Positions 13,148 to 58,738 of a stretch of DNA of 64,000 nt are shown one piece after another; within the stretch, counting starts at the first letter, position 1; each line of letters starts with the position of its first letter. The notes under the pieces are model-generated. The model had not been told where the DNA came from. It saw only the letters and a program-made list of their open reading frames with translations, and ran no database searches. The stretch spans positions 1,178,001-1,242,000 of the forward strand of contig JANHCV010000001.1 in assembly GCA_025594325.1 (NCBI GenBank). Direction: 5' to 3'. Source of the stretch: Blastocladiella emersonii ATCC 22665 (lineage: Eukaryota; Fungi; Blastocladiomycota). Position numbers and translations under genes: made by a program.

Positions 13148-14693
13148 ATGCAATACGAAATCAACTGGCCACAGGCCAGTTTCCTGACCATCACGCCGCT
13201 GCTGGCGCTCTACGGCGTTTCGACGGTCCCGCTCGAGTCAAGAACATTCACCTGGGCCTTCATCTACTACTTGATCACCGGGCTCGGCATCACGGCGGGC
13301 TACCACCGCCTGTGGGCGCACAAGTCGTACGACGCGTCGCTGCCGTACCAGCTGTGGATGGCGCTCGCCGGCGCTGGCGCGGTCGAGGGCTCGATTCGCT
13401 GGTGGTATGTAGTAGCCGTTTTCTCGCCGCTTGCTCGCCCGCTTGCTCGCTGGGGTTGTGTGCGTGATGGAGCCATGATCGCGACGCGTTCGTGTGGCGC
13501 ACGCGCGCGACCCGAAACTGTCTCGCAGTGGCGCTGCAGCCCCAAGACTTGGAGGAGGTGGCTGCACGCGCGGGACCGGGCACTCGGCTCGCGGAACGTC
13601 TCGCACCCGCAGCCCCAGCGCCCGATCGTCCCGTCCCCACGCATCCGCTAACTCGACTGCCTCGCTTTCCCCCAGGTCCCGCGGCCACCGCGCGCACCAC
13701 CGCTACACCGACACCGACAAGGACCCCTACAACGCGCACCGCGGCCTGTTCTGGGCCCACATCGGGTGGATGCTCGTCAAGGAGACGGGCCCGAGCGCCA
13801 AGGCGCTGGGCCGCGTCGAGATGACGGACCTCGACAACGACCCGCTCGTCAAGTGGCAGCACAAGAACTACGTGCCGCTCGCGCTGTTCATGGCCTTCGC
13901 GTTCCCGACGCTGGTCGCGGGGCTCGGCTGGGGTGACTGGCTCGGCGGCTTCTTCTTCGCCGGCGTCGCGCGGCTCGTGTTCGTCCACCACGCCACTTTC
14001 TGCGTCAACTCGCTCGCTCATTACCTCGGCGATGCCACGTACGACGACATCCGGTCCCCACGCGACCACTTCATTACGGCGCTGGTCACGTTCGGCGAGG
14101 GTACGCGCTCTCTGACGGCTCGGGGCGGCTCCGGTCGCTCCCCAAACCCGTTTTCGCTCTTTTTTTTCGACTCCCTAACCTCACCAATCATCGAATACGT
14201 GTCAGGTTATCACAATCTACATCATGAGTTCCCTAACGAGTTCCGCAACGCCGTCAAGTGGTACCAGTACGATCCGACCAAGTGGCTGATCTGGACCTGC
14301 TCGCTCGTCGGCCTCACGCACAACCTCAAGACGTTCCCCGACAACGAGATCCAGAAAGGCGAGCTGCTCATGACCGAGAAGCGCTGCCGCGAGTGGCGGC
14401 ACCGTTTGGACTGGGGGAAGGCGACCGAGACGCTACCCGAGTGGGACGCGACGACCTTCACCGAGGAGCTCAAGCTCAACCCGTTCATGATGGTCATCGA
14501 GGGAGTCGCCTTCGACGTCTCGCACTTCATCAAGGACCACCCGGGCGGCGTCAACTTCATCAAGTCGTACCTCGGCAAGGACGCGACCAAGGCGTTCAAC
14601 GGCGGCGTGTACCGCCACAGCACGGGCGCGCGCAACCTCATGTCGCACCTGCGCGTCGCTCGCGTCAACATGGACGATGCTCGCGAGGAGTAA
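13148..14693 (+). CDS. OLE1: Delta-9 fatty acyl-CoA desaturase with C-terminal cytochrome b5 domain, 3 exons
   Basis: His boxes GYHRLWAH, HRAHHRYTDTDKDPY and GEGYHNLHHEFP; b5 heme motif HPGG. Introns 13405-13675 and 14101-14205 join the frames. Confidence 0.95.
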
Positions 14694-15040: not shown

Positions 15041-15196
15041 TCGCGGCAGCGCTTCTTGGTCATGAGCAGCTCGCCCTTCTGGATCTCGTTGTCGGGGAAC
15101 GTCTTGAGGTTGTGCGTGAGGCCGACGAGCGAGCAGGTCCAGATCAGCCACTTGGTCGGATCGTACTGGTACCACTTGACGGCGTTGCGGTAGGGA
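15041..15196 (-). pseudogene. Inverted partial copy of OLE1 exon 3
   Basis: 15041-15190 is the reverse complement of 14243-14392 (150 bp) with two substitutions seen (AAA>AAG; GAG>AAG). 15191-15196 matches 14230-14235 after a 7-bp deletion. Flanked by direct repeat cgcgcttg at 15032-15039 and 15198-15205. Confidence 0.9.
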
Positions 15197-19380: not shown

Positions 19381-21492
19381 ATGACCGCCGTCATCGACAA
19401 TGGTACCGTGCCTGGCGCCGCGGGGCTGCTCGATCACATCGGTTGAACCTAGCCGCATTCTGACCAAGCGCCGTTCACCACAGGCTCGGGCCTCTTCAAG
19501 GCCGGCTGGGCCACGGACGATGCGCCGATTGGTATGCATTTTTCATCCTATGTGCCGCACGCAAGCCGAGCGCTCACCGCCGTCCCCGCGCTAGTCATGA
19601 CCGACCCGACCGTCAACAAGCTCCGCGACCGCCACACCGCCGTCAACACGGTCCACGTCGGCTACCTCGGTGGTCAGCGCGCGCGCACACCCTTTGACGA
19701 CGGCGTCGTGATCAGCTCCGATCTCATGGTACGCTGAACCGTCGCTACAGGCGCGAGCGTACGCGACTCACACTCCATTCGCTTGCTCTCTGTAGGAGAC
19801 CATCTTCGACTACGGGTTCATCAACCTAGGCGCGACCCCGGACAACCTCGAACGCGTCGTCCTCACCGAGCCCGCCACGAACCCGCCGCTGAGCCGAGCC
19901 ATCGTGCAGGAGCTCATGTACGAGGCCTACAACGTGCCCGAGCTCGCCATCGGCGTCGACGGCCTCCTCTCGCTCTACCGCAACGCACCCAACGCGTTCC
20001 CCGCCACGCCGACACCAAACCACATGGCCGTCGCCGTCTCGGTTGGCCACAGCAGCACCACCGTCATCCCCGTGGACCCGTCGGGCTCGCCCGACTTTTC
20101 GGCCGCGCAGCGGTACGCCGCATCTGGTACGGAAACTGTCGGTGCCACTGATTGACACCTCGCGCCGTCCCACGTAGGCTCTCGGTCGGCTGGGAGAAGC
20201 TGCACGGCTACATGCAGCACCTGGTCCAGACAAAGTACTGGGACTTCCCGCACATTTTCGGCTTCCGCGACCATGAGGACTTCATCCGCCACCACTGCTA
20301 CGTCGCCCAGTCGTTCCCGGCCGAGCTGCACCGCCTCCTCGCCGACCCAGCCGCCGACGTGGTAGTTCAGTACCCCGTCACCTCAACAGTACGCGTCCCC
20401 CAAACCACCACGCGATACCCCAAATCCTGCTGACTCTGCGCGCACTGTGTAGCACACTCAAGCGATCCTCGAGCGCGTTACCCTCACCGCCGAGGAGCAG
20501 GCCAAGCTAGCCGCCGACAGGCCGAAATGGATCGCCGAGCTCGTCTCGGCCCGCGCCAAGCTCGCGGAAAAGGCCAACCGCCAGAGCGCCGGATCAGCCG
20601 CACGGAAAAAGTCGGAGACCGCGACGCGGATGCGCGTCATGGCCTCGCTGCTCGACGAGGACGAGGAGGATACCGGCAAGGGGCGCCGGCGAAAGCGCGC
20701 TCGTGCGACTGGTACGTACCGCTGTCGCTGATACTTTCGAAATGCCGACCCACTCACGAATGGATTTCCGCTGTTTGTAGAGGATCGGTTCGGCGACGAC
20801 ACGGCCGGGTGGCAAGTCTACACCTCCCTGGTACGATTTCCACGCGGATATGCAGCAAAGGAACAACTGACACGGCCTGTTGAATATAGTCCAAGGACTC
20901 GCCCGACGACATCGACGACGACGCATCCGCCGCACTCGCTCGACTAGACCGACTGCTCGCCGAATACGACCCGCTGCGCCTGCACCGCGTTAGGGACCAG
21001 ACCACGGTGCTGCACCGCCTGTCCCGCGGCGCGCCCATCGCACCGGACACACCCGACGACGAGCGTTTCCTTCGTGCGCACCAGGTCCGGCTGAACGTGG
21101 AACGCGTGCGCGTGCCCGAGGCGCTGTTCCACCCGTCGCTGGTGGGCGTGGACGAGGCGGGCCTACAGGACCTGGTCCTCTCGGCGGTGCAGGCGGTGCG
21201 CCGTCGCTGCGACAACGACAACTCGAGAACGAGTCCGATCACGGCAGCGACGGTCGTGTGCAGCGGCGGCGGCGCGACAATCCCAGGGCTCGCGGACCGA
21301 CTCGGGCTCGAGCTGACGCGCGAGCTGCCACAGGCCTTTTCGCTCGACGTGCGGCGCGCGGCGGACCCGGTCGTGGACGCGTGGCGCGGCGCGGCGACGG
21401 CGCCCGTGGCGTACGTGTCGCGCGCCGAGTACTTTGAGCACGGCGCGGGGTGGTTCCGCGACCACCGGTTCGGCAACCCGGCCGAGTGGTGA
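19381..21492 (+). CDS. ARP5: Actin-related protein 5 (INO80 complex), multi-exon
   Basis: Actin-fold motifs VIDN|GSGLFKAGWA, VVLTEPATNP, QELMYEAYNVP, VGHSSTTVIPV, charged insertion, RVRVPEALFHPSLVGVDEAGL, DAWRGAA, SRAEYFEHG. Several gtac../..ag introns. Confidence 0.88.
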
Positions 21493-21745
21493 CGCGGTAG
21501 TGATGTGACGAATACAGGACCAGTTGATGGCACGGTTGATTGCGCGGGAGAGTCTTGCGCGGGAGCCCTGCGCGCGGATAGACCCGCAGAGAAGGGACGC
21601 GTTGTTCATGCGCGTGGACGTGATCGCGCGCGTCTCGCGTGTCTCCCGAATACAGCAACGTGAGGGCAACGCCGAACACACACACGTTTACTGAACCTCA
21701 CACACAACAACGAAACGAATGTAAAGGCGACTCGCTGCAACGCAC

Positions 21746-23269
21746 ATGAAAATGAATGACAAAGGAGCACTCGTCGACGCATGGATCTCGCTGTCGGTGT
21801 ACTCGGCCACGCTGCCCATCAACCTGTACTTTGCGCGCAAGTTCTGGCGCGAGTGGACCCTCGCTGGCCGCCGCCGCGCTGGGCTCGAGCACCAGCAGTA
21901 TGTTCTGTGGGTGTCGTTTTCGGCCGTCCACGCGCTGCACATGGCGAGCTCGGCGGCGCGGATCCTCGAGGAGCAGGCTGGCATGGTCCAGTGCCCGTCA
22001 GGACCGAGCGCCTCGCTGTGCTGGCTCGGGGCTGCGCGAGCGAGCACGCTGATCCTTGACGCAGCGTGTCTGGGCGAGGTGCTGGCGCTCCCCGTGTACC
22101 CGGTCCTCCTGCTTGGCACGGCACTCGACGCGCTGCCTCGGCTGCAGCTGACTCGCCACGTTTTTACGGGTTGCAAGGCGCTGCTCCTCGTCCTGACGGC
22201 CGTCCTCGCGACGCTGATCCCGCTGCGCACGGCGCTCCGCCTGATCGGGCCGGGCGCGTGGCTCGGGCTGGGCACCTTTTTCGGCGTATACGGACTGGTC
22301 TTCAACCTCTACTTTGGGATGCTCGTGGTCCTGGCCACCATGGCGCTCGCGGGCATCTTTTGGATCATTGCGCGGTCGCGTCCTGGCGCTGCGGCGCGCA
22401 CTAGCATTCGTGCCTCTCGACCCACTTTACAGCAGCAGCACGACCGAGATCAGGCCACTGCAGCGGCACCTACTCGGCTGCACTTGTCTCCCGGTACCGC
22501 CACAACACCTGCCGTTGTGGGCGAGAACAGCCCTTCGTGCGAGCCATCACTGCCCAAGTCTCGCAGCGGCGAGCGTCCAAAACGCACATCCTCATTCTCG
22601 CGTGCCAAGCTCCTCGTATCATTGAAGCGCGCTTGCGGCCGACCGCACACGGTTGAACCACTGAACGACACCGTGGTCGACCCGAGGACCAGCGACGGTT
22701 CGAGCGATACCCAGTACCAGCGGTGCTTTGTTCGACTCGCCGTGCTCGTGGCGTGGACGGTACTGCTCCTTGGCGGGAACGCCTACTTGGTTTCAGGCGC
22801 TGCAGGGCTCTCGGCGCAGCTCAACGACGTGATCGGATGGGTGAGCGCGCGCTTGATCACCGTCAGCTTCTACCGCGCGCGAAAGTTGCTGCGCGACGTG
22901 ATGATTCTTTGGCGCCGGCTTCCAAACGCCGAGGCGGGGACGCTCCTCGCGAGCGCGTGGAATCCGCAACAACAACAACAACAGCAGCAGCAGAAGCAGT
23001 CGGGCAACATGACTGCGTTGTCGTCGCACCATCACGCTGCGACTTCGTCGACTCGACCAACGACGTTGGCGTCTGCGACGGAAAATTGGAGCACGCTTGG
23101 CCGTAGTTCGAGCAACCACCATCAGCACCAAAGCCGCGATGATGCTCATGAGATTGGAGACCATTCCAGCGACAATGATGCAGCAGCCTCCTATTACGTG
23201 ATGAGCCTTGCGCGGAGTGGACAACGGGACGACGAGGGGAAGAGTGACGCGCTCCCCTTGCCAACTTGA
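21746..23269 (+). CDS. Orphan 7-TM GPCR-like protein, paralog A copy 1 (507 aa, intronless)
   Basis: Seven hydrophobic segments with a long Ser/Pro/Arg-rich loop between TM5 and TM6. Motifs EVLALPVYP and IGWVSARLI shared with 57045-58493 and 58739-59806. PolyQ in the tail. Confidence 0.75.
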   Translation: MKMNDKGALVDAWISLSVYSATLPINLYFARKFWREWTLAGRRRAGLEHQQYVLWVSFSAVHALHMASSAARILEEQAGMVQCPSGPSASLCWLGAARASTLILDAACLGEVLALPVYPVLLLGTALDALPRLQLTRHVFTGCKALLLVLTAVLATLIPLRTALRLIGPGAWLGLGTFFGVYGLVFNLYFGMLVVLATMALAGIFWIIARSRPGAAARTSIRASRPTLQQQHDRDQATAAAPTRLHLSPGTATTPAVVGENSPSCEPSLPKSRSGERPKRTSSFSRAKLLVSLKRACGRPHTVEPLNDTVVDPRTSDGSSDTQYQRCFVRLAVLVAWTVLLLGGNAYLVSGAAGLSAQLNDVIGWVSARLITVSFYRARKLLRDVMILWRRLPNAEAGTLLASAWNPQQQQQQQQQKQSGNMTALSSHHHAATSSTRPTTLASATENWSTLGRSSSNHHQHQSRDDAHEIGDHSSDNDAAASYYVMSLARSGQRDDEGKSDALPLPT

Positions 23270-24495
23270 AGGCGCGACGCTCACGCGCGCGTCTAGGAAA
23301 TACAAACAGTTTTGGGAACGTGATGCAAGTAGTCCATGCCGAGAAACTCAAGCGCACACGCCGGCCGGCTTGCCGTGAGCGACGCGGGACGCCATCAAGT
23401 GAGCGATCAGACTCGACGCGTTTCAGGCTGCGTGCGCCACAGTGGCTGAGTGGCGCGACGCGCGAGCGCATGCTAGGCGGTAATCCGATCCCCTGGGCGC
23501 GTTCTCGGGGCGCAGGTTTGTCAAACTCGCTCGCTCGACTCAGAAAGGACTGCGGAGCACGCACAGCCACGGGCGAGCTAGATGATGGCCATTTGTGGGC
23601 GGGAGCACCACGTTCAGGCAGGAACTCATCATCGGGTGTTGAGCTGTGCAGGTCAAGCGAGAGGAGGCCACGATACAGCTAGTCAGGGTGGTGTATTCCT
23701 GCTTCGGCACTGAACCAGGGCTGGGTGAGTGAGGGAGACTAACAGAAGCGGGGAGCGCCGCCGCGGGAGTGCGGCAGGCGGCGAGGCGGGATGCGGACAA
23801 ACCACGCGAGATCAAGGTGGATGATGACTCCGATCACCACTGCATGAACGACGTGTAACAGAGGGTCCCCGACCGAGAACGCCGCGACAAGCGTGCGCCA
23901 GAAGATAACCATGTTGGATCCCACAAGCAATATGTTGACGGAATCGGACACCACGCTTGGTTCGACAAGCTGGTAAGCGTTGACAATGGTTCGAGAGTGC
24001 CGCGGGAGCGCAACTGGCCGTTGTGGTCAGTGTAATCGGAGTCGGAGAGATATGCTCAGCATGACGGACTCAAGCGGTGAACTACTCCGCAAACAAGAGG
24101 ATGATGTGGTACACGCAGGAACAACCCTTCAAAAGCGAATGCGGCTCAACCGCTGCTTCTGCATGTCGTCGCACAGAGCGAGGTTCTCCGCCAGGGCCAG
24201 GGACGCGTGCTACACGACGGCAATGCGAGACTGTCGGCCATGTATAGTTGCGACGTGTGAAGCAGTTCCATTTGATGATAGTTTGAGTGACGCTAACGTT
24301 AAGAGCATCGATAAAGGTCCAGTACCACTAGCGCAGGGAGCAAACGGGAGGCTGCGTGCGCGGCTCGGAGGGAAGCCTGCTCCGTAACCCCAGCAGGAGC
24401 CTCGCAAACCGGAAAAGGGTAAGAACAGCGAGCTGGAACGAGGAGATTGACCAGGCCGGAACGGCCTGGTCAGGGGCACAAGAAAAAAAAAGAAA

Positions 24496-24577
24496 CGACA
24501 ACGACAGGGTTCGAACCTGTGAGCGACTAGCGCAACTGATTAGTAGTCAGTCCCCTTAACCACTCGGGCACGTTGCC
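24496..24577 (-). tRNA. tRNA-Ser, anticodon ACT (copy 1)
   Basis: Reverse complement of 31879-31960; same cloverleaf with long variable arm and G73. Confidence 0.88.
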
Positions 24578-24956
24578 GTCAATTTTTGGACACATTTCCT
24601 ACCCCCGCTACGAGATTTATGAACTCTTCTCTCCTTCAAGTCCGCTCTCGGACCCTTGGCACAAAATATGAGTTTAATAGGCCAGGACTAGTCCAAATAC
24701 TACCAGATAATCATCAAATGATTGGCAGGCTTACTGGGCACCATTAGAGGTCTTGAAATACATTACAATATTACTCGCTGATTAGATGCGTTAAACCAAG
24801 CTATCCCTTTAGCGACGACACAATGTGTTCACGCGCGTGCCCGACCCGGAACATCAAAAGTCGCTGCACACCTCGGCGTTCCAGGCTTCAAAAACAAAGG
24901 GGAGCAAGCGTGAGGCTATTCCAGGGCAAAAACACTTTGCCACCAGGATGCAAAAG

Positions 24957-25028
24957 GGGCTCGTCCGGGGATTGAACCCGGGACCTCGCACACCCGAAGC
25001 GCGAATCATACCACTAGACCAACGAGCC
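24957..25028 (-). tRNA. tRNA-Pro(CGG) (copy 1)
   Basis: Reverse complement of 31428-31499. Confidence 0.92.
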
Positions 25029-26470
25029 TTGAGGACAGGCCGCTTCATAAAACCCATATTGGCCCGTCTGGACTGGTCGCACTGTCCCGAGTGCGGAGGT
25101 GCGCGCTCCACTCCCCGTCCCCGTCAGTTGGGCGACGGCGACCACCGGGAGCGGATAGAGATACCAAGCATCGAGGAGTCGCATCCCATGCCTGTCGTGC
25201 ATTGCTCTAAAACACCGCGCAAGGCCATGGCTGCGTCGGAGAAGAGGTTTCGGCGAGCCCCGGGTCGGAGGCGAATTAGAGCACTAAGTTCCCGACCCCT
25301 CCCACACCCGTAAATTAATTCTGATAATTGCCGGAGCACCACTAAAATTGCTCATTTGACATATCTGAGCCGTATGTGCAATATCAGCCCGGACCAATAT
25401 GCCACTCAATTCAAGAAGCTAAGCCTTAAGTCCGTTTTTCGTCCGAGCGACCAAACCGAAAGTTTTTTTCAACTTTGCACGGTCGGACGAGTTCTCGATA
25501 CCCCGACACCCCGACTCGCAGGTTTTCACATATTCCGGACCTCTGAAGGTCGCTGATCACGAATCTGCCTTCAGAAAAATGTTTCCGATGCATCTTGAAT
25601 TTAGACAGCTAAGTCGTGTCACGTGAGCCGAGGCCTCGAGGCGCGGCCAGCGACGCGTCGTTCACCTCCGCGTGACCACGAAGCACGCGTTGGATCACTG
25701 CGCGGGTTGGTTTGCTCCCGCCCCTGTCCGACGAGTGAAAGGGTAGCATCCGCAACAGAACCTTGCACAGACAATCGCGCGGAACAACGAATGAGATGCT
25801 CACTCGCCCAGGCGACTGTCACTTGGTACTTGGTGGCGCAGACGCGGCAACGCGCACGCGTCTGCTTCATACCACATCGCTGCGAGTGCAACTGGTTATC
25901 CAGCTGTACGAACAGCCGCGCGTTGGGGGCTACTCCCAACCACCAGTTCTGGACGATCCCTCGCAGCTCAAAGCTCAACATGCACGCGAAGCTGGCGCGT
26001 AGCGTGCTAGATTAGGCACATGGTGCGACCGTTATCGCGACTCGATGGCCCAGGTGCCATCGCGCGAGCGCGCGGGCATCACGGTTTGAATCAAGGGCAC
26101 TACTACCACGTCGACTTGCCCGTTTCGCTCACCCGTACTGAAACTGCGGAGCGGTTGACAGACTTCGCGAGCAACCGTTCGAGGAGACCCGTGAAAGCGA
26201 CGAGCGTGGTGCCAAACCTTTGAAAGCTGACTCGCTTCAGCGTCAAGGATGAGGGGGATCACTTGCCTGTCAAAAGGAGTTTTTGCAGAAGCGCGGTTTT
26301 TATCTCAAATCAATCATCGAGCGGGGACAAGATGGTCGAGGAGAACGGCGCAACAAGAGATGGAAGGGAGAGGGAAGAGCAAATCGAACGAGTTCAACGA
26401 GAAAGAGGAACAGGGGGACAGGGAGACGAGAAAGGCAAACAACGAGGAGGGAAGAAGCACATCGGCGGAG

Positions 26471-27560
26471 TCAGCGATGTCGAGGCAGGATGATCGGGCC
26501 GCACGCAGCAAGCCGTACCTCAGCAACGCGAATCCACTTCTGGACCACGGCGTCGCAGTGCGTCTTGGTCCCGTGGAGCGAGCCCTTGACAATCGCGTAG
26601 ATCCGGTTGTAGATAACCGGCGCGTTGGCCTGGAGGATCGCGGCGACAGCGGCGCCCACGACCTCGGGTTCCTCGGACTGGATCTTGCGGATGGCCGCGC
26701 GGACCTTCTTGACCAGGTCGCCGAGCTGCAGCGACGCCAGCGCCGCCAGGTCCGTGGCCAGGTCTGCGCGACCGGTACTCGAGGATCACGCGGGCCGTTG
26801 CGGCGGCGGCCGAGTAGTCGCGCGAGTCGATCGCGTTGGCGCGGGTCGCGAGTCCCGTGCACTGGTTATACACGGTGCGCGAGACACGGCGGATGGCCGA
26901 TTTCTTGGGACCCTTGAGGACCTTGGCCGGCTTGACCTTCTTGGGGGTGGTCGAGGTGACGGCGGGCGTGAGGCCCGCGGTGTCGACTTTGACCTGCAGC
27001 TGCTGGTGCTCGGGAGCGACGGGGGTCTGTCGGGTGGTTTGGTTCGTCGTGAGTCGTGGATCAGTGAGCGAGGGAGAGCTGAGACAAGACGTACCCCGCC
27101 GAGACTGAGCTGCGACGCGGACTTGTGGAGGCGCCTTGAGCGGCGCCTTGAGCGCGCCGACGACCTTGTCGAGGAACGACGGCGAGGACGGCTTGAGCGT
27201 CGACTTGGAGGCCGCCGAAGGCTTGGACACGGGAACGAGGTGCTCCTCGGAGCCCGAGTTAGCGACGGCGACGGCGTGGTCGGCCGCCGGCGTCTCGACC
27301 GACTCGTCGTGGGCGAGCGCGGGAGCGGGAGCGGGAGCGGGAGCCGGGCTGGCGGCGGCGACCACGGTGGAGTTGATCTGGAGCTGGGCGAGGGCCGAGA
27401 ACGTGTCGGGGACGGCCGTAGCCGTCGACGGGAGCGGCGCGGCCTCGTGCAGCTTGATGGCGGCGGCGGGCGCGGACGTCGCCGAGATCGACTCGTACAT
27501 GGCGCAGAGTCGGGCGATGCGGCCGCGGCTGCGCATGAGGGGCACCTCGAGCGACACCAT
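26471..27560 (-). CDS. Hypothetical protein starting in the IR spacer and ending in the left arm; reading frame apparently interrupted (possible pseudogene)
   Basis: Strong GC3 bias from ATG 27560. Canonical-looking 68-nt intron 27027-27094. Codon bias switches to the +1 frame at about 26765 (DLATDLAALASLQLGDLVKKVRAAIRKIQSEEPEVVG...). The 3' end is uncertain. Confidence 0.55.
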
Positions 27561-29617
27561 GATGCGGATGGTGATGATGGTGAGCTTGAGGTCGAAGACG
27601 ACTGACGGACTGGCCTGGAACAGGGCCGGTCGGGTCGGTGGGGTCGGGTCGGATGCAGGTGGCGCAGGAGCGGCGGTGCCGAGATGCTGAGCCGTTCAGA
27701 TCGGGCCGTAGTCGAGCGTCGCGAAGATGACGGCGCGGTAGACGTCGATGGCGGAGGCGAGCGTGAACGGGAGCGGGCGGGCGATGCCGATGTGCGCAGG
27801 ATGCAGCCGGGGGTGGTGCAAATCCAGGATAGGACGTGCGGGAAGCTCGGTCAAGATGTTGCAGTGCGGGATACGGGTGGGACTGTAGTCAGCAGGGCAG
27901 CGCGATGGACGGGCAGGGGTATGAGGAAGAGCGAGCGGGGATGGCGGGGCTTCCGGCCGCCTTCATAGTTCCAGTCCGTTGCATGAAGAAAGGTCGTCGC
28001 TGTCAAGCCGATTCAGTCACGACGGCAGACTGACTGGTTCGTCGTCGACGGGCCGTGGTGGCGGAGCGGGAGCAGGATGAAAACCAGTCGGAAAGCACGC
28101 GCGACTGGCCACCTGACCCGAGCTGACCCTTGACCTGCTTTCACCGCTCGCTGGAGGTGTGATCGCGGTGCAGGGGTGACGTCGATGGCGCGGATGCGAA
28201 GAACGTGATGTATCGCACTTTTGGTGTGTATCGAAAGCGCGGGGAGTGTTGCAGCTGCAAAAAGGGATCGACAGCGGAGCGCATAGAAAGCTTGCCAAGG
28301 TCAATCGGACCGTCGCTAGGGTGCAACGGGACTGCGACCCCGACGCCGCGGCAGTCGCCCCGAGCGAGCACCGGGTTGAGAGTTTAGAGGCGATGGTGCG
28401 ACCGACGCAAGGGCGAGAACCTGCGGAAAGCCGCCGTGACGCCCGAGTCGCGCCGCGACGCTCTAGGAAGGTAGGAAACGACGCGGTACAGCTCGAGGAA
28501 GCGCGTAAGCGCGAGTATATACGAAAGCAGCTACCGAGCGAGCGCCACCGGTGCGTCTTCGCGAAGGATCGAGCCGGCGGTGTTTGTGCGTGTCGAGGAA
28601 CGACCGGGGAGGGGTTGCGCGTGTCGGGGAGAGTGGTGACGAGGCGGCGGCGGGCGGAGGCGCGCAGTGGAGGAGGTTCGCATGGTCGGTGCGGCATAGG
28701 TTCAGCAAGTCGTGTCGAGCGGGATACATGGGTTTCGGGACAGGCGGTTAGCGCGGGCAGCGGGAGTGCGATCAGCGACGACGCACATGGGTGGCCGGTG
28801 GCGTCGTCGGGCCGTGTGGCGGCGCCACGTTGGGACCGCGGAGAACGCGCACGCGGGGCACGTCGACGGCTGAGATGAGACACGACGCGGTGCGCGTGCG
28901 AGCCCGCCGAGTCGACCACCACTCGCTGAATCTGCGGGTCGGGCTACAGAGCGCGTCGAAGCGAGTCAGTCTGTCAGTGAGGCGTGTCCGACAGCGCGGA
29001 CGTCCCGTTGCACGGCCTCGATGCTGTGCAGCCGTGGAGAGTGCGACCGCTTGGCGCCCGAGACCGACGGCCGCCGCGAGCTCGTTGTTCCACTCTACAA
29101 CAGTTCCACTCTACGACAGAGGCAGTTCGGTAAGGTCGCGGCCGTGACGGCGGCAGCGGATCCGTGAGCTCCGAGCGCGGCGGGGATTGCTGATGTCTCG
29201 CGTGATGTTCTGCGCGATCGGCGCGAGGTCTGCCGCGTCGCGGGAGCACCGGAGCGCTCACGCGAGTGCTCTCGGCGCACGTTGCAGTCACTCGATGACA
29301 TCTTTGCACCGAATCATCATCGGGGTTGGTTTCATCTCGGGCGGGTGAGGATGGCGAAGAAGAGAGGGAGAGCCAGCGGAAAGAGCGACGCGTTCTGGAG
29401 TGCAACAGGCCGCCGCTCGCTCGCTCACTTTCCGCCGTGGCCTCTCTCACTTACGCTCTCCAACGAAGACTATCATGGCGCACTACTTGATGCAATTGCT
29501 TCGACGGTGAAACTGGTGCTCGGCCGCGCGCCGTGCAGTCTGCTGTCAACTCGGGGGGGCACTTGGCAGCAGCGGCGCACCGCACTCCGAGTCGTCGCGC
29601 CTCATTGCCAGCCTAGA

Positions 29618-29985
29618 CAACGCGATCGACTCGCGCGACTACTCGGCCGCCGCCGCAACGGCCCGCGTGATCCTCGAGTACCGGTCGCGCAGACCTGGCC
29701 ACGGACCTGGCGGCGCTGGCGTCGCTGCAGCTCGGCGACCTGGTCAAGAAGGTCCGCGCGGCCATCCGCAAGATCCAGTCCGAGGAACCCGAGGTCGTGG
29801 GCGCCGCTGTCGCCGCGATCCTCCAGGCCAACGCGCCGGTTATCTACAACCGGATCTACGCGATTGTCAAGGGCTCGCTCCACGGGACCAAGACGCACTG
29901 CGACGCCGTGGTCCAGAAGTGGATTCGCGTTGCTGAGGTACGGCTTGCTGCGTGCGGCCCGATCATCCTGCCTCGACATCGCTGA
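29618..29985 (+). pseudogene. 5'-truncated copy of the spacer gene's 3' end (in right arm)
   Basis: Begins mid-ORF at the inner junction (...gcctaga|caacgcgatcgac...); lacks the start and first exon. Confidence 0.8.
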
Positions 29986-31427
29986 CTCCGCCGATGTGCT
30001 TCTTCCCTCCTCGTTGTTTGCCTTTCTCGTCTCCCTGTCCCCCTGTTCCTCTTTCTCGTTGAACTCGTTCGATTTGCTCTTCCCTCTCCCTTCCATCTCT
30101 TGTTGCGCCGTTCTCCTCGACCATCTTGTCCCCGCTCGATGATTGATTTGAGATAAAAACCGCGCTTCTGCAAAAACTCCTTTTGACAGGCAAGTGATCC
30201 CCCTCATCCTTGACGCTGAAGCGAGTCAGCTTTCAAAGGTTTGGCACCACGCTCGTCGCTTTCACGGGTCTCCTCGAACGGTTGCTCGCGAAGTCTGTCA
30301 ACCGCTCCGCAGTTTCAGTACGGGTGAGCGAAACGGGCAAGTCGACGTGGTAGTAGTGCCCTTGATTCAAACCGTGATGCCCGCGCGCTCGCGCGATGGC
30401 ACCTGGGCCATCGAGTCGCGATAACGGTCGCACCATGTGCCTAATCTAGCACGCTACGCGCCAGCTTCGCGTGCATGTTGAGCTTTGAGCTGCGAGGGAT
30501 CGTCCAGAACTGGTGGTTGGGAGTAGCCCCCAACGCGCGGCTGTTCGTACAGCTGGATAACCAGTTGCACTCGCAGCGATGTGGTATGAAGCAGACGCGT
30601 GCGCGTTGCCGCGTCTGCGCCACCAAGTACCAAGTGACAGTCGCCTGGGCGAGTGAGCATCTCATTCGTTGTTCCGCGCGATTGTCTGTGCAAGGTTCTG
30701 TTGCGGATGCTACCCTTTCACTCGTCGGACAGGGGCGGGAGCAAACCAACCCGCGCAGTGATCCAACGCGTGCTTCGTGGTCACGCGGAGGTGAACGACG
30801 CGTCGCTGGCCGCGCCTCGAGGCCTCGGCTCACGTGACACGACTTAGCTGTCTAAATTCAAGATGCATCGGAAACATTTTTCTGAAGGCAGATTCGTGAT
30901 CAGCGACCTTCAGAGGTCCGGAATATGTGAAAACCTGCGAGTCGGGGTGTCGGGGTATCGAGAACTCGTCCGACCGTGCAAAGTTGAAAAAAACTTTCGG
31001 TTTGGTCGCTCGGACGAAAAACGGACTTAAGGCTTAGCTTCTTGAATTGAGTGGCATATTGGTCCGGGCTGATATTGCACATACGGCTCAGATATGTCAA
31101 ATGAGCAATTTTAGTGGTGCTCCGGCAATTATCAGAATTAATTTACGGGTGTGGGAGGGGTCGGGAACTTAGTGCTCTAATTCGCCTCCGACCCGGGGCT
31201 CGCCGAAACCTCTTCTCCGACGCAGCCATGGCCTTGCGCGGTGTTTTAGAGCAATGCACGACAGGCATGGGATGCGACTCCTCGATGCTTGGTATCTCTA
31301 TCCGCTCCCGGTGGTCGCCGTCGCCCAACTGACGGGGACGGGGAGTGGAGCGCGCACCTCCGCACTCGGGACAGTGCGACCAGTCCAGACGGGCCAATAT
31401 GGGTTTTATGAAGCGGCCTGTCCTCAA

Positions 31428-31499
31428 GGCTCGTTGGTCTAGTGGTATGATTCGCGCTTCGGGTGTGCGAGGTCCCGGGTTCAATCCCCGGACGAGCCC
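31428..31499 (+). tRNA. tRNA-Pro(CGG) (copy 2)
   Basis: GGCTCGT/ACGAGCC acceptor, TGGTCTAGTGGTATGAT A-box, anticodon loop TT-CGG-GT, CCGGG-TTCAATC-CCCGG T-arm, followed by a TTTTT terminator. Confidence 0.92.
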
Positions 31500-31878
31500 C
31501 TTTTGCATCCTGGTGGCAAAGTGTTTTTGCCCTGGAATAGCCTCACGCTTGCTCCCCTTTGTTTTTGAAGCCTGGAACGCCGAGGTGTGCAGCGACTTTT
31601 GATGTTCCGGGTCGGGCACGCGCGTGAACACATTGTGTCGTCGCTAAAGGGATAGCTTGGTTTAACGCATCTAATCAGCGAGTAATATTGTAATGTATTT
31701 CAAGACCTCTAATGGTGCCCAGTAAGCCTGCCAATCATTTGATGATTATCTGGTAGTATTTGGACTAGTCCTGGCCTATTAAACTCATATTTTGTGCCAA
31801 GGGTCCGAGAGCGGACTTGAAGGAGAGAAGAGTTCATAAATCTCGTAGCGGGGGTAGGAAATGTGTCCAAAAATTGAC

Positions 31879-31960
31879 GGCAACGTGCCCGAGTGGTTAA
31901 GGGGACTGACTACTAATCAGTTGCGCTAGTCGCTCACAGGTTCGAACCCTGTCGTTGTCG
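31879..31960 (+). tRNA. tRNA-Ser, anticodon ACT (copy 2)
   Basis: GGCAACG/CGTTGTC acceptor stem, D-arm CCCGAGTGGTTAAGGG, anticodon stem ACTGA/TCAGT with loop CT-ACT-AA (anticodon 31912-31914), long variable arm GCG-CTAGT-CGC, T-arm ACAGG-TTCGAAC-CCTGT, discriminator G, T-run terminator immediately downstream. Confidence 0.88.
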
Positions 31961-33186
31961 TTTCTTTTTTTTTCTTGTGCCCCTGACCAGGCCGTTCCGG
32001 CCTGGTCAATCTCCTCGTTCCAGCTCGCTGTTCTTACCCTTTTCCGGTTTGCGAGGCTCCTGCTGGGGTTACGGAGCAGGCTTCCCTCCGAGCCGCGCAC
32101 GCAGCCTCCCGTTTGCTCCCTGCGCTAGTGGTACTGGACCTTTATCGATGCTCTTAACGTTAGCGTCACTCAAACTATCATCAAATGGAACTGCTTCACA
32201 CGTCGCAACTATACATGGCCGACAGTCTCGCATTGCCGTCGTGTAGCACGCGTCCCTGGCCCTGGCGGAGAACCTCGCTCTGTGCGACGACATGCAGAAG
32301 CAGCGGTTGAGCCGCATTCGCTTTTGAAGGGTTGTTCCTGCGTGTACCACATCATCCTCTTGTTTGCGGAGTAGTTCACCGCTTGAGTCCGTCATGCTGA
32401 GCATATCTCTCCGACTCCGATTACACTGACCACAACGGCCAGTTGCGCTCCCGCGGCACTCTCGAACCATTGTCAACGCTTACCAGCTTGTCGAACCAAG
32501 CGTGGTGTCCGATTCCGTCAACATATTGCTTGTGGGATCCAACATGGTTATCTTCTGGCGCACGCTTGTCGCGGCGTTCTCGGTCGGGGACCCTCTGTTA
32601 CACGTCGTTCATGCAGTGGTGATCGGAGTCATCATCCACCTTGATCTCGCGTGGTTTGTCCGCATCCCGCCTCGCCGCCTGCCGCACTCCCGCGGCGGCG
32701 CTCCCCGCTTCTGTTAGTCTCCCTCACTCACCCAGCCCTGGTTCAGTGCCGAAGCAGGAATACACCACCCTGACTAGCTGTATCGTGGCCTCCTCTCGCT
32801 TGACCTGCACAGCTCAACACCCGATGATGAGTTCCTGCCTGAACGTGGTGCTCCCGCCCACAAATGGCCATCATCTAGCTCGCCCGTGGCTGTGCGTGCT
32901 CCGCAGTCCTTTCTGAGTCGAGCGAGCGAGTTTGACAAACCTGCGCCCCGAGAACGCGCCCAGGGGATCGGATTACCGCCTAGCATGCGCTCGCGCGTCG
33001 CGCCACTCAGCCACTGTGGCGCACGCAGCCTGAAACGCGTCGAGTCTGATCGCTCACTTGATGGCGTCCCGCGTCGCTCACGGCAAGCCGGCCGGCGTGT
33101 GCGCTTGAGTTTCTCGGCATGGACTACTTGCATCACGTTCCCAAAACTGTTTGTATTTCCTAGACGCGCGCGTGAGCGTCGCGCCT

Positions 33187-34710
33187 TCAAGTTGGCAAGG
33201 GGAGCGCGTCACTCTTCCCCTCGTCGTCCCGTTGTCCACTCCGCGCAAGGCTCATCACGTAATAGGAGGCTGCTGCATCATTGTCGCTGGAATGGTCTCC
33301 AATCTCATGAGCATCATCGCGGCTTTGGTGCTGATGGTGGTTGCTCGAACTACGGCCAAGCGTGCTCCAATTTTCCGTCGCAGACGCCAACGTCGTTGGT
33401 CGAGTCGACGAAGTCGCAGCGTGATGGTGCGACGACAACGCAGTCATGTTGCCCGACTGCTTCTGCTGCTGCTGTTGTTGTTGTTGTTGCGGATTCCACG
33501 CGCTCGCGAGGAGCGTCCCCGCCTCGGCGTTTGGAAGCCGGCGCCAAAGAATCATCACGTCGCGCAGCAACTTTCGCGCGCGGTAGAAGCTGACGGTGAT
33601 CAAGCGCGCGCTCACCCATCCGATCACGTCGTTGAGCTGCGCCGAGAGCCCTGCAGCGCCTGAAACCAAGTAGGCGTTCCCGCCAAGGAGCAGTACCGTC
33701 CACGCCACGAGCACGGCGAGTCGAACAAAGCACCGCTGGTACTGGGTATCGCTCGAACCGTCGCTGGTCCTCGGGTCGACCACGGTGTCGTTCAGTGGTT
33801 CAACCGTGTGCGGTCGGCCGCAAGCGCGCTTCAATGATACGAGGAGCTTGGCACGCGAGAATGAGGATGTGCGTTTTGGACGCTCGCCGCTGCGAGACTT
33901 GGGCAGTGATGGCTCGCACGAAGGGCTGTTCTCGCCCACAACGGCAGGTGTTGTGGCGGTACCGGGAGACAAGTGCAGCCGAGTAGGTGCCGCTGCAGTG
34001 GCCTGATCTCGGTCGTGCTGCTGCTGTAAAGTGGGTCGAGAGGCACGAATGCTAGTGCGCGCCGCAGCGCCAGGACGCGACCGCGCAATGATCCAAAAGA
34101 TGCCCGCGAGCGCCATGGTGGCCAGGACCACGAGCATCCCAAAGTAGAGGTTGAAGACCAGTCCGTATACGCCGAAAAAGGTGCCCAGCCCGAGCCACGC
34201 GCCCGGCCCGATCAGGCGGAGCGCCGTGCGCAGCGGGATCAGCGTCGCGAGGACGGCCGTCAGGACGAGGAGCAGCGCCTTGCAACCCGTAAAAACGTGG
34301 CGAGTCAGCTGCAGCCGAGGCAGCGCGTCGAGTGCCGTGCCAAGCAGGAGGACCGGGTACACGGGGAGCGCCAGCACCTCGCCCAGACACGCTGCGTCAA
34401 GGATCAGCGTGCTCGCTCGCGCAGCCCCGAGCCAGCACAGCGAGGCGCTCGGTCCTGACGGGCACTGGACCATGCCAGCCTGCTCCTCGAGGATCCGCGC
34501 CGCCGAGCTCGCCATGTGCAGCGCGTGGACGGCCGAAAACGACACCCACAGAACATACTGCTGGTGCTCGAGCCCAGCGCGGCGGCGGCCAGCGAGGGTC
34601 CACTCGCGCCAGAACTTGCGCGCAAAGTACAGGTTGATGGGCAGCGTGGCCGAGTACACCGACAGCGAGATCCATGCGTCGACGAGTGCTCCTTTGTCAT
34701 TCATTTTCAT
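33187..34710 (-). CDS. Orphan 7-TM GPCR-like protein, paralog A copy 2 (identical, in right arm)
   Basis: Identical 507-aa translation to 21746-23269; the upstream intergenic region is also duplicated. Confidence 0.75.
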   Translation of the reverse strand: MKMNDKGALVDAWISLSVYSATLPINLYFARKFWREWTLAGRRRAGLEHQQYVLWVSFSAVHALHMASSAARILEEQAGMVQCPSGPSASLCWLGAARASTLILDAACLGEVLALPVYPVLLLGTALDALPRLQLTRHVFTGCKALLLVLTAVLATLIPLRTALRLIGPGAWLGLGTFFGVYGLVFNLYFGMLVVLATMALAGIFWIIARSRPGAAARTSIRASRPTLQQQHDRDQATAAAPTRLHLSPGTATTPAVVGENSPSCEPSLPKSRSGERPKRTSSFSRAKLLVSLKRACGRPHTVEPLNDTVVDPRTSDGSSDTQYQRCFVRLAVLVAWTVLLLGGNAYLVSGAAGLSAQLNDVIGWVSARLITVSFYRARKLLRDVMILWRRLPNAEAGTLLASAWNPQQQQQQQQQKQSGNMTALSSHHHAATSSTRPTTLASATENWSTLGRSSSNHHQHQSRDDAHEIGDHSSDNDAAASYYVMSLARSGQRDDEGKSDALPLPT

Positions 34711-34963
34711 GTGCGTTGCAGCGAGTCGCCTTTACATTCGTTTCGTTGTTGTGTGTGAGGTTCAGTAAACGTGTGTGTGTTCGGCGTTGCCCTCACGTTG
34801 CTGTATTCGGGAGACACGCGAGACGCGCGCGATCACGTCCACGCGCATGAACAACGCGTCCCTTCTCTGCGGGTCTATCCGCGCGCAGGGCTCCCGCGCA
34901 AGACTCTCCCGCGCAATCAACCGTGCCATCAACTGGTCCTGTATTCGTCACATCACTACCGCG

Positions 34964-35394
34964 TCACCACTCGGCCGGGTTGCCGAACCGGTGGTCGCGG
35001 AACCACCCCGCGCCGTGCTCAAAGTACTCGGCGCGCGACACGTACGCCACGGGCGCCGTCGCCGCGCCGCGCCACGCGTCCACGACCGGGTCCGCCGCGC
35101 GCCGCACGTCGAGCGAAAAGGCCTGTGGCAGCTCGCGCGTCAGCTCGAGCCCGAGTCGGTCCGCGAGCCCTGGGATTGTCGCGCCGCCGCCGCTGCACAC
35201 GACCGTCGCTGCCGTGATCGGACTCGTTCTCGAGTTGTCGTTGTCGCAGCGACGGCGCACCGCCTGCACCGCCGAGAGGACCAGGTCCTGTAGGCCCGCC
35301 TCGTCCACGCCCACCAGCGACGGGTGGAACAGCGCCTCGGGCACGCGCACGCGTTCCACGTTCAGCCGGACCTGGTGCGCACGAAGGAAACGCT
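34964..35394 (-). pseudogene. ARP5: 5'-truncated ARP5 3'-end fragment (in right arm)
   Basis: Identical to 21062-21492 (RFLRAHQVRLNVERVRVPEALF...GNPAEW*), cut at the outer junction. Confidence 0.85.
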
Positions 35395-35453
35395 TCCCCT
35401 CGCGTTGACAGCGCAGGGGAATCTTTGAGTTCAAGCAAGTCAATGCTGTGTAT

Positions 35454-37440
35454 TCATGGCAAGTAGACGAAATTCCGAGGTAGGCCGGAGACGTGGCGGT
35501 TAGTGATCTGACTGTTGATTCTTGATAAGCTCAGAGCGGAGGCACTCGATGAGCAGCGTTTCCAGCTCCTCCTTCGTTACGGTCTAGATAGGACGCGGGG
35601 TTAATACACACGGTCGTTACTCGACGACACGCGGACGTACCCGTTCTTGCTGCTTGAGCTCCTCGAGTTCCTTTTCCAGCGCGCGGAGCTTGGCCATCTC
35701 CGCCTCGAGCGCCGTACCCGACCGCTCGGGCTGCGTTCCAGCGCGACTCGCCACTACCGATCGCTCGGAAGGCGCGAGACTCGGAAGCGACGGAACGTTC
35801 GACGGCGTCGGCGAGGCCCAGCCGGACACGGGAAGCGACCAGGCCGCGATCTTGGACTGCCACTCGTTGGGCGGGACGAGCTCGGTCAGTTTCCTACGAG
35901 TTGGTAGGGTCGTTAGATGCTCATTTACCGTGCAACTCCATCGTGAGCTAAAAGCGCACCGATGAATGTCGTCGAGACGTCGCGAATCGTATTCATCGAG
36001 CGAGTACGCGGTCCGAACCGACACGTCGCTGCGAGGGCCGGGCCGGCTCGAGAGCTTGGCTGTTGCGTCACGCTCACGGCTCTTCGCCTACACGTTCGCG
36101 AGATTCATGGAGTGAGCATTACATTCATTTCTCGCGACTGAGGTGGTTCGAGGACAAGGCAGGGACATTCAACAGCGGCCATCGAGGTCCAGCTTTCAAA
36201 TGTATTGCGTCGGTGTCATCGCGAACGGGATCATCGGGGGAGCGGAGCGGAAAGAGAGCGAGGGGCGGGGAGGTGACGTAGGGTAGCAGAAGGAGCGGGA
36301 AGGCTGGATCCGGATCGACTTCCACGGTCGAGCCGTATCACTGGTCGGAAGTCGGCGGCGGGTTCGCGAGGTCGCGACTGGCGCGCTCGGCGCGGATCTT
36401 CTGCTCCTCCTCCATCATGGCAAGTACCTGGCCGTAGGGCATGTCCGTGTCGAGGCCGTCGTCGCTCGAGTCGTCACCATCGTCGGCGCCCGAGCCCGCC
36501 ACGTCCTCGTCGCTGTCGTCCTGCATGATCTGGTCGACGCGGTCCTGCTCCTTGGGAGTCAGGGCCGAGTAGTAGCGCGCCTCGGGCCCGAGCTACACGG
36601 AGGCGAAGGTCAGTCGCGATCATGAGCGTAGTCGGCGTGGATGGTGCGCACCTCCTTGTTCCGCGTGATGAAGTTGTTGCTGCCCTGGTCGAAGATGCGC
36701 TGGATGCGAACGAGGTGCTCGATCGACGACGACACCTCGCTGTCCTTGTTGCGCTCGATCTTGGGGCGCGGGATGGGCGGGAACTGGGGCATGCCGTCGT
36801 CGACCTCGGAATCGTCGTCGTCGGAGTCTACACAAGTTGCGCGCACCGTGTGTCAGGTTCGCGGATCTCGTTCGAAGACCAAACGCGGGACCGTACCGGC
36901 CAGGTCGGCACCGGGGAGCTGCGTCAGGAACGCCGTCGACGCGCGGGCCTCCTCGTTCTTGGTCGGGGCCGACTCCTTGGGCGCGAGGCGGTGCATGGAC
37001 GAGGAACTGCCCGTCGGGCGCTTGTCGGCCGCGGTGGCGGCGGGCGCGGCGAGGGCCATGTTGGACCCGCTCGCGCGCTCGAGATCGTGGCGCTTGCGGA
37101 CGAGGTCGTTGAGGTACTTTTGCTTGGCGTTGAACATGTTGTCGAGCTCGCCGATCTCGCCGAGCGCCGACTTGAGCTGGTCGATGGACAGCGACCCGTC
37201 CTTGGTGCGGCCGCCGTCGAGCGGCGTCGTGTCGGCGAGCACGCCGAGGTCGTCGACGAGGCTCTCGTCCGAGCCCGTGCTGGCCATGCGCGTGCCCGCG
37301 GGCGTGGTGGCGTGCTCGGACGTGGCGTGCGGCATGATCTTGATGTGGACGTGGTGCGGCACGTCGACGAGGGTGTCGGTGGAAGAGGTCACGGCGGACT
37401 TTGGCGTCAGTGCGGGAGAAGTCCAGCTTTCCGTTGCCAT
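35454..37440 (-). CDS. FSIP1-like (fibrous sheath-interacting protein 1 family) coiled-coil protein, multi-exon; splicing at 36090-36340 unresolved
   Basis: Exons encode NNFITRNKE|LGPEARYYSALTPKEQDRVDQIM, RRLDDIHR|KLTELVP (66-nt intron with ctaac branch point) and LEKELEELKQQER|TVTKEELETLLIE, resembling FSIP1-family motifs as I recall them. An in-frame TGA lies at 36338-36340. Confidence 0.5.
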
Positions 37441-57044: not shown

Positions 57045-58493
57045 CTATATTCGAGGCGTCAACACCGCCTCCTCGGACCGAGCGACGCCCGGCCGCGGGA
57101 CGCCCGAGAACCCGATCGTCGTGCGCCGCCGCTCCCACGACCCGTCGTCGATGTCGGTCGCGGCCAAGCGCTCGCCCGTTAACATGGTCTCACGGCGCTT
57201 GCCGCTGCCGAGATCGGCGCCCTCGCTCCCCGTCTTCTTGAGCGTGAGCCCGAGCTGCAGCGTGCCGTTGACGTCGCGGCGCCCGATCGTCGGCGGCGCC
57301 CACTCGGTCGCGAGCGTTCCCGCGTCGGCGTTGGGCAGCTGCCGCCGCAGCTTCATGATGCGCTTGAGCTCGCGCATCGACAGGAAGAAGTTGGCCGTGA
57401 TGACGCGCGCAAAGGTCCAGCCGATGGCGTTGAGCAATACCACCGTCAGCTGGTCGGTTCCGAGCGACAGGATCGCCGTGATGATGACCAGGACCACGGT
57501 CGTGACCGTGTAGATCCACAGCCGCCGGATCGCGATGCGGTACCGGTCGGCCGGCGACGGCGCCGAAGTCGAGTGCGGTCGGTGGCCCGGGAGACGCGAC
57601 TTGAGCGAGGTGAAGGACGACGTCGCGCGCGCGGGTGAGGTTGGCGTGGACAGCATCGCGGCGGACCCGTTGGCCGCGGCCGAGGTCCCCGAATGCGTGG
57701 CGCCCGACTGCGCGGCGCCCGATGGGCCGTGGATCGAGACGGCGGACGCTGTAGCGTTGCTGGCCGTCACGTACGAGTCGGTGGTCGTTTCCTGCAGGCT
57801 CGGCGACTCGACGGGCAGGAGCGTCTTGCGGCGTTTAAACAGTTCGCGCATGTTCATGCTCGCGAGCTGGCCGCGCTTGCGGCCGGGCCCGCCGATCGAC
57901 CCGCCACCCGCCATGGCGAGCAGGACCACAATGTACCCGACGGCCCACAGCGCGACGGCCGAGACGAGGAAAAAGTAGGTAATGGTGACCGTGTTGATGA
58001 TGAGGGCCTCGGCGGCGAGGATCTCGAACCCAAAGTGGATGAGCGCCGTCTGCCACGACGTGGCGACGACCTGGGCGAGCGTCGCGAGCCCCGTGAGGTA
58101 CAGGACAAACTTGCGGAACCGCTTCATGGCCGGGCGCGAGTGGTTGAACTGGCCGGCCATGGCGAGGATCGCGGCCGGGTACACGGGAATCCCGGCCGTC
58201 TCGAGCAGCACGCCCACGTTCTTGGTCAGCGAGATGGGGCAGCTGCCGAGATCGTTGCCCGAGTGGTTGGACGGCACGCCGTTGCATTGCTCGGTGGTGA
58301 TGGCGAGGCAGGCGTAGGTGGTGTGGACGAGCTGGGCCGACGTGAAGATGATCCAGACGAAGACGTTGACCCGCGTCTTGGAGTCGGGCCGCCTCGCGAG
58401 CTGCTTCGCAAAGTCGCTGAGGAAGTAGATGCAGACCGGGATCCCGGCCACGAAGATGACGAGCGAGACCCACGCGCTAGCAAGCGGGTCCAT
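57045..58493 (-). CDS. Orphan 7-TM GPCR-like protein, paralog B (482 aa, intronless)
   Basis: Seven hydrophobic segments, long TM5-TM6 loop, ETAGIPVYP, IGWTFARVI, LPNADAGTLATEW; two Cys in the first extracellular loop. Confidence 0.75.
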   Translation of the reverse strand: MDPLASAWVSLVIFVAGIPVCIYFLSDFAKQLARRPDSKTRVNVFVWIIFTSAQLVHTTYACLAITTEQCNGVPSNHSGNDLGSCPISLTKNVGVLLETAGIPVYPAAILAMAGQFNHSRPAMKRFRKFVLYLTGLATLAQVVATSWQTALIHFGFEILAAEALIINTVTITYFFLVSAVALWAVGYIVVLLAMAGGGSIGGPGRKRGQLASMNMRELFKRRKTLLPVESPSLQETTTDSYVTASNATASAVSIHGPSGAAQSGATHSGTSAAANGSAAMLSTPTSPARATSSFTSLKSRLPGHRPHSTSAPSPADRYRIAIRRLWIYTVTTVVLVIITAILSLGTDQLTVVLLNAIGWTFARVITANFFLSMRELKRIMKLRRQLPNADAGTLATEWAPPTIGRRDVNGTLQLGLTLKKTGSEGADLGSGKRRETMLTGERLAATDIDDGSWERRRTTIGFSGVPRPGVARSEEAVLTPRI

Positions 58494-58738
58494 GGTTTCA
58501 TGTTTTGCGCAGATCTGCGACTGACGATCTCATTGTGTTCGAGCGCAAGGAGGGAGCGAGAGCAGCCGAATCGCCGGGGCACTCTGGCCCCGATCCAGAA
58601 CGGAGATATCGCATCACGTGATTGTTCGACGCGTCGAGCATCGCGTCTCCCGCGTGTCTCGCATCTCCCGCATACCGTGCATCGCCACCGCCACCGCAAC
58701 CACACCACCGCAACTTAATTTGGTATTTACCCATGTAT

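Follow-up and report, generated by a model that had tools for sequence, protein, structure and literature searches.

The genome of Blastocladiella emersonii ATCC 22665 contains a long, gene-bearing palindrome, in which two identical inverted arms of 5,777 bp flank a unique spacer of 2,779 bp. It lies in a stretch of 64,000 nucleotides (contig JANHCV010000001.1 of assembly GCA_025594325.1, positions 1,178,001 to 1,242,000 of the forward strand), here referred to as the window, and all coordinates below are positions within it. There is little doubt that the duplication is real in this culture, and its sequence features make it on balance likely that the palindrome is a genuine, fixed and young inverted insertional duplication in the chromosome of this strain. 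The evidence consists of an exact comparison of the arms, the sharpness of their ends, the gene that crosses the outer end of only one arm, and the read-derived contigs that contain both of the new junctions. Here, these lines of evidence are presented together with the alternatives that were weighed against them.

The left arm occupies positions 21062-26838 and the right arm positions 29618-35394. When every position x was compared with the complement of position 56456-x, all 5,777 of the 5,777 pairs matched, with no mismatches and no insertions or deletions, and the first base beyond each arm end was a mismatch. The same pair of arms, extended by 11 loosely matching bases at each end, was returned by a repeat finder. 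The per-base chance match rate at the locus is 0.275, and a perfect match over 5.8 kb is therefore not due to chance. The perfect inverted repeat of 5,777 bp and the 2,779-bp spacer that had been described in an initial annotation of the window were thus confirmed by exact alignment. The left arm contains the last 143 codons of an ARP5-like gene, a gene for a membrane protein with seven predicted helices (the 7-helix gene), two tRNA genes, a dispersed repeat and the 3' part of a gene that begins in the spacer (the spacer gene), and the right arm is its exact reverse complement. The unique spacer (26839-29617) holds the 5' part of the spacer gene and its upstream region, with a weak coding signal from 27850 on, and its two halves showed no inverted homology to each other in a sensitive blastn comparison.

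The two arms differ in what lies beyond them. The ARP5-like actin-related protein gene (19381-21492, + strand; 501 amino acids in GenBank, PF00022) gave Pfam Actin matches of 3.2e-13 and 5.1e-10 on its exon open reading frames (ORFs). Its exon at 20890-21489 runs unbroken over the outer end of the left arm at 21061/21062, with Actin matches on either side, while the right arm retains a truncated 3' fragment of the gene (34964-35394, - strand; the last 143 codons). An intact ARP5 is present on the left side alone, which marks the left arm as the original and the right arm as the derived one. The ancestry of the left arm had already been proposed in the initial annotation on two grounds. The first, the continuity of ARP5 over the outer end, holds, whereas the second, drawn from the spacer gene, does not, since that gene would cross the inner end of either arm. 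That a gene crosses the inner end of the left arm was itself borne out by codon periodicity and by the 278-amino-acid GenBank model over 26129-27560. The derived arm sits in DNA bounded by the 3' end of an FSIP1-like gene and the region upstream of the spacer gene, and no gene was broken.

The insertion created two new junctions. At the inner one (29617/29618) the end of the spacer meets the inverted arm, and at the outer one (35394/35395) the inverted ARP5 fragment meets the right flank and abuts a stem-loop at 35395-35420. Both joints are blunt, with 0 bp common to donor and acceptor and no filler. Beyond each arm end 7 of 20 bases match, which is near the chance rate, and no microhomology or microhomeology above chance was detected. 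No direct repeat of 1-14 bp that could represent a target-site duplication was found at the insertion, and sensitive blastn revealed no collinear inverted homology outside the arms. At either end, a single base separates 100% identity from background.

Such abrupt ends, which carry no decayed fringe, would be the original and uneroded breakpoints, and they favour a young duplication over one maintained by conversion. Mutation rates in fungi are 2e-10 to 1e-9 per base per division. If no conversion took place, the upper bound on the age of the duplication, given by about 3/(2 x 5777 x mu) with mu as the mutation rate, would be a few hundred thousand to about 1 million nuclear divisions. The alternative that survives best is an old palindrome whose arms have been held identical by ongoing arm-to-arm gene conversion, possibly along with selection that favours a doubled membrane-protein gene. 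We consider it possible but rather unlikely. Conversion would explain why no difference has accumulated over 5.8 kb, intergenic DNA and dead gene fragments included, and why 1.3% divergence is seen in a nearby 150-bp inverted copy, which at that length conversion probably could not homogenise efficiently. However, old palindromes are expected to erode from their edges, and neither arm end has a decayed fringe or collinear inverted homology beyond it. Arm identity around the unique spacer exceeds 99.9%, as in palindromes of the Y-chromosome type, and signs of age combined with homogenisation were not seen: the comparison was confined to one isolate, and the homolog of the 7-helix gene in Catenaria anguillulae lies in an unrelated neighbourhood. 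No statement on the ploidy of B. emersonii was found in the literature searched.

The existence of the duplication was examined in Logan contigs from four sequencing runs of one sample (X1-X4), which were compared with positions 29506-35505. The published genome of B. emersonii comprises 21 contigs with a total of 34.27 Mb, and was assembled with the La Jolla Assembler (LJA) from a low-input PacBio high-fidelity (HiFi) library with a mean read length of 10.5 kb, cleaned of haplotigs with purge_dups, and polished with Illumina reads of 65 bp, for which the DNA had been prepared separately (PMC9730499). Run X1 appears to be this 65-bp Illumina library; its flank depth of about 29 fits the 64x of that library, which corresponds to about 34x for 31-mers. 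Run X2, judged by its long contigs, would be the HiFi library, and thus a DNA preparation separate from the Illumina one. In run X4, the loose contig ends at 30895 and 32452 read as loxP linker sequence, and T-insertion errors were present; this run looks as if the sample had been sequenced from a paired-end library of the 454-style Cre-lox type.

The inner joint is crossed in two runs, by a 452-letter contig of X1 that covers 29506-29647 at a depth of 28.5 (30 arm letters) and by a contig of X2 that covers 29506-29654 at a depth of 108 (37 arm letters). At the outer joint, a 2.5-kb contig of X1 (depth 29.9) and a 33-kb contig of X2 (depth 138) both start at 35365. The 30 arm letters that these contigs contain ahead of the joint equal the k-1 overlap that a branch in a de Bruijn graph should produce, and it follows that every 31-mer across the joint exists in the reads. 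Depth points in the same direction. The arm contig at 31480-35394 has depths of 68.4, 254 and 11.1 in X1, X2 and X3, respectively, as compared with flank depths of 28.5-29.9, 108-138 and 4.1-4.6, so that the arm-to-flank ratio is 2.3-2.4, 1.8-2.35 and 2.4-2.7, or about twofold. In addition, a 703-letter contig of X3 follows the arm to 35394 and then continues into other sequence, which is what the original ARP5 side should give. Among the run contigs compared with this region, none joined 29617 to 35395, as an empty site would require, and the arm showed no variant letters in the contigs of X1-X3.

If the palindrome were an artefact of the assembly or the library, for instance a mis-joined haplotig or a fold-back chimera, the genome would have only one arm, and perfect identity would be expected as well. 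The low-input HiFi library, the haplotig purging (PMC9730499) and the single sample behind all the read evidence are circumstances in which an artefact of this kind could arise, and the initial annotation had named it as the alternative. It is nevertheless very improbable, since both new junctions occur in contigs assembled from the reads of two runs whose depths differ greatly, the arm stands at about twofold depth in three runs where mis-joined alleles would give onefold depth, and no contig links 29617 to 35395. Moreover, an artefact would require a pair of false joints, coordinated so as to lead back into the correct right flank. The initial annotation's artefact explanation can therefore be set aside.

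Equally improbable is a programmed flip-flop switch, in which recombination between the arms would invert the 2.8-kb spacer and so control the spacer gene or the genes next to it, in the manner of the mating-type (MAT) loci of methylotrophic yeasts: the locus does offer long perfect inverted repeats around a short unique segment with a promoter and the 5' part of a gene, but a flip would alter neither the coding sequence of the spacer gene nor the 2 kb upstream of it nor the next 5.8 kb or more to either side, the ORFs scanned yielded no recombinase or mating-type domain, and one orientation was carried by the assembler through a 5.1-Mb contig. Because at least 5.8 kb of context stays the same on each side of the spacer, a regulated switch is unlikely and any flip would be a passive by-product. 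Recombination between perfect 5.8-kb arms across 2.8 kb is, on general grounds, to be expected, and flipping of the spacer between the arms is plausible. The sequences at the arm/spacer junctions are identical in both isomers, and k-mer contigs are blind to the orientation.

The origin of the young inverted insertion can be outlined as a series of proposed steps. The ancestral order would have been ARP5, the 7-helix gene, the tRNA genes, the spacer gene and the FSIP1-like gene. The intergenic DNA that separates the upstream region of the spacer gene from the 3' end of the FSIP1-like gene may then have broken at the foot of the small stem-loop. This stem-loop (35395-35420) has a 10-bp stem with one bulge and a predicted energy of -11.0 kcal/mol (z -3.4 against shuffles), lies directly at the insertion point with its 10-bp stem entirely in the right flank, and has a stem about 3 bp longer in the reconstructed empty site. 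The break would have been repaired with a 5,777-bp copy of sequence that starts 2.8 kb away, inserted in inverted orientation, and both ends would have been joined without homology, either by end-joining or by homology-free template switching. As the outcome, there are now two identical copies of the 7-helix gene and of each of the two tRNA genes, together with dead 3' fragments of ARP5 and the spacer gene. The arms would now be able to recombine with each other, flipping the spacer and keeping themselves alike. The repair route itself is a guess. If foldback had used a short inverted repeat that was already present at the inner joint, this repeat would now be concealed within the arm, so that foldback may still have been the route there.

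Two candidate routes were rejected. A transposon-borne duplication was dropped on the grounds that there is neither a target-site duplication nor a significant transposase. In the ORFs scanned in the arm and the spacer, no significant match to a transposase, recombinase or mating-type domain was obtained, the best being a hAT dimerisation domain (E 0.16) and an IS66 zinc finger (E 0.075); these domain scans and the junction comparison agree with the earlier observation that the locus has no transposase and no outer target-site duplication. A microhomology-mediated replicative rearrangement of the type described as microhomology-mediated break-induced replication or fork stalling and template switching (MMBIR/FoSTeS) was rejected as well, as neither joint has microhomology or templated filler.

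Direct repeats of at least 40 bp are absent from the whole window, and besides the palindrome it has a single true inverted repeat. In this second case, a 150-bp piece of an exon of an OLE1-like desaturase gene (14243-14392) is found again in inverted orientation at 15041-15190, which is 648 bp downstream and past the stop codon. The copy has sharp blunt ends, no microhomology and 2 mismatches (1.3%). As judged from these features, this event, 7 kb from the palindrome, is of the same signature as the main one, only smaller and older. It is conceivable, though doubtful, that an unusually active homology-free process in B. emersonii pastes inverted copies of nearby DNA into the chromosome, with the palindrome and the 150-bp event as its freshest scars, and that this process is a main route by which families of sensory and membrane-protein genes have expanded.

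Several points weigh against a young and fixed inserted duplication. The lack of any difference between the arms would be just as well explained by efficient conversion from arm to arm. A single sample of one strain is the source of all four runs, so that presence is demonstrated for this culture only. The contigs at the outer junction reach exactly 30 arm letters, one short of what is taken as bridging, and contig depth is a rough measure of copy number, the arm having a lower GC content than the flanks. Replicative template switching rarely leaves two blunt joints, since blunt ones account for about 6% of join-points (PMC6902434). Finally, no empty site is available from an outgroup or a second isolate, and sequence may have been lost at the insertion point.

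The protein gene that is duplicated whole is the 7-helix gene. Its left copy is a 507-codon ORF at 21746-23269 (+ strand), annotated in GenBank as H9P43_000416 (219 amino acids, 21752-22664), and its identical right copy lies at 33187-34710 (- strand) and is annotated as H9P43_000423 (219 amino acids, 33792-34704). The 219-amino-acid GenBank protein and the 507-residue product of the ORF are 99% identical over residues 3-218 in an exhaustive HMMER search. The GenBank models are probably truncated, because the 507-codon ORF is uninterrupted and is matched by paralogs and, up to residue ~408, by an 'integral membrane protein' of Catenaria anguillulae that aligns with it at 24-28% identity. Two tandem paralogs are present at 57048-59806 (- strand), where they are fused in the single model H9P43_000433 (804 amino acids), and the family thus has four members within the window. 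Both a word-index homolog search and an exact look-up of the 507-residue sequence were blank, and the family was found only by the exhaustive HMMER search. With two tandem paralogs in the window and a homolog in Catenaria, the gene belongs to a small family of Blastocladiomycota, and the term 'orphan' applied to it previously was too strong. The genes next to the Catenaria homolog are unrelated to those of the locus, with no synteny between the two.

In an AlphaFold (AF2) model for which six sequences were used, the protein forms seven long helices, with a long disordered loop (residues 212-317) between helices 5 and 6, but the mean predicted local distance difference test (pLDDT) score is 56.6. 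The best Foldseek matches of this model were G-protein-coupled receptors (GPCRs) and TMEM87A, with template modelling scores (TM-scores) of at most 0.35 on the query and at most 0.47 when normalised by the match, and with weak E-values. No Pfam family was assigned to the protein. A seven-helix topology is supported by the predicted structure, and this part of the earlier description as a receptor stands; a receptor function is not borne out by TM-scores of at most 0.35 on the query and the lack of a Pfam family. No RNA runs were listed as containing the gene.

The two tRNA genes were identified by ARAGORN and Rfam. The tRNA-Ser(ACT) gene (Rfam 55.2 bits) lies at 24495-24578 (- strand) and 31878-31961 (+ strand), and the tRNA-Pro(CGG) gene (Rfam 50.4 bits) at 24956-25028 (- strand) and 31428-31500 (+ strand). 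The anticodon loop of the tRNA-Ser is CTACTAA, which confirms the anticodon ACT, a normally avoided one. No other gene was called in the arm, in agreement with the earlier statement that only the 7-helix gene and these two tRNA genes were doubled whole. The initial annotation had suggested a raised dosage of the receptor and tRNA genes; a benefit from it is speculation. In the bin that contains the tRNA-Pro gene (31306-31505), the summed X1 contig depth is 535.7, as compared with 68.4 for the arm. This roughly eightfold depth implies many look-alikes of the tRNA-Pro gene elsewhere, so that one extra copy adds little.

The dispersed repeat of about 170 bp (30831-31000, with its mirror at 25456-25625) reaches a summed contig depth of ~690 in X1 against 68 for the arm. 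By this depth it would have roughly 20 copies in the genome, and contigs branch at both of its ends. An Rfam search of the repeat gave no match, and thus no hidden small RNA.

The spacer gene (26129-27560, - strand; 278 amino acids in GenBank) starts in the spacer, has its 3' 710 bp in the arm, and encodes a low-complexity protein for which neither Pfam nor the Atlas gave a lead to any known family. Its codon periodicity extends from 26480 to ~27800. At 26720-26790 (- strand) the peak of third-position GC content shifts from phase 0 to phase 2, which fits a short intron or a frameshift. Across the new outer junction, a GenBank 'Actin' model of 212 amino acids (34964-36182, - strand) combines the ARP5 fragment with exons of the right flank; it may be either a chimeric transcript or a prediction artefact. 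In general, the GenBank calls, the Pfam matches and the codon-position periodicity agree on the layout of the genes.

The locus is a perfect palindrome with genes in its arms, verified by reads and with both breakpoints known at base resolution, from a flagellated fungus of an early-diverging lineage. In the published description of the B. emersonii genome, tandem duplication was reported and no inverted duplication or palindrome is mentioned (PMC9730499). As the joints are unworn, this is a good locus at which to ask how palindromes are born. The analysis also flags likely annotation errors, namely the two truncated 7-helix models, one fused pair of paralogs and one chimeric 'actin' model, and it points to a possible site of instability in a strain that is under development as an optogenetic model.

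The palindrome is a kind of structure that is already known, and several systems can be compared with it. The palindromes of sex chromosomes, such as P1-P8 of the human Y chromosome, range from 9 kb to 1.45 Mb, are conserved across species, and have been demonstrated to undergo gene conversion. The B. emersonii locus resembles them in its near-identical mirror arms, its unique spacer and its genes in two copies, whereas the sharp ends of its arms argue for youth. In methylotrophic yeasts (Ogataea, Komagataella), a flip between inverted repeats moves MAT genes beside silencing chromatin, and both orientations have been documented. The inverted repeats of a few kb that flank a potentially invertible segment are shared with these yeasts, but the B. 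emersonii locus has no mating-type genes, and a flip would bring no change of context within 5.8 kb.

Long inverted repeats that bear genes are also known in Candida albicans, where they reach up to 6.5 kb, are separated by kilobase spacers, and serve as passive substrates of rearrangement (Todd et al., 2019, eLife, PMC6591007). Inversion between such repeats was shown there by polymerase chain reaction (PCR), for example as a 3.1-kb flip at CEN4 (PMC6591007). Both fungi thus have gene-bearing inverted repeats in a chromosome. The repeats of C. albicans are mostly less than 100% identical (median ~94%) and have a median spacer of tens of kb (PMC6591007), whereas those of B. emersonii are perfect and have a spacer of 2.8 kb.

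With regard to its origin, the locus can be compared with products of break repair and replication-fork switching. In yeast, foldback priming normally leads to dicentrics and the loss of terminal sequence (Al-Zain et al., 2023, PMC10622511), while the B. emersonii chromosome simply continues. Human replicative rearrangements of the duplication-normal-inverted duplication (DUP-NML-INV/DUP) and related types usually show microhomology or microhomeology, about 6% of their join-points being blunt (PMC6902434); in contrast, both joints of the palindrome are blunt and a single segment was gained. In common with these foldback and DUP-NML-INV/DUP structures, which are products of break repair or fork switching, the B. 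emersonii palindrome has an inverted copy set apart from its source by a segment of normal copy number, and two new join-points.

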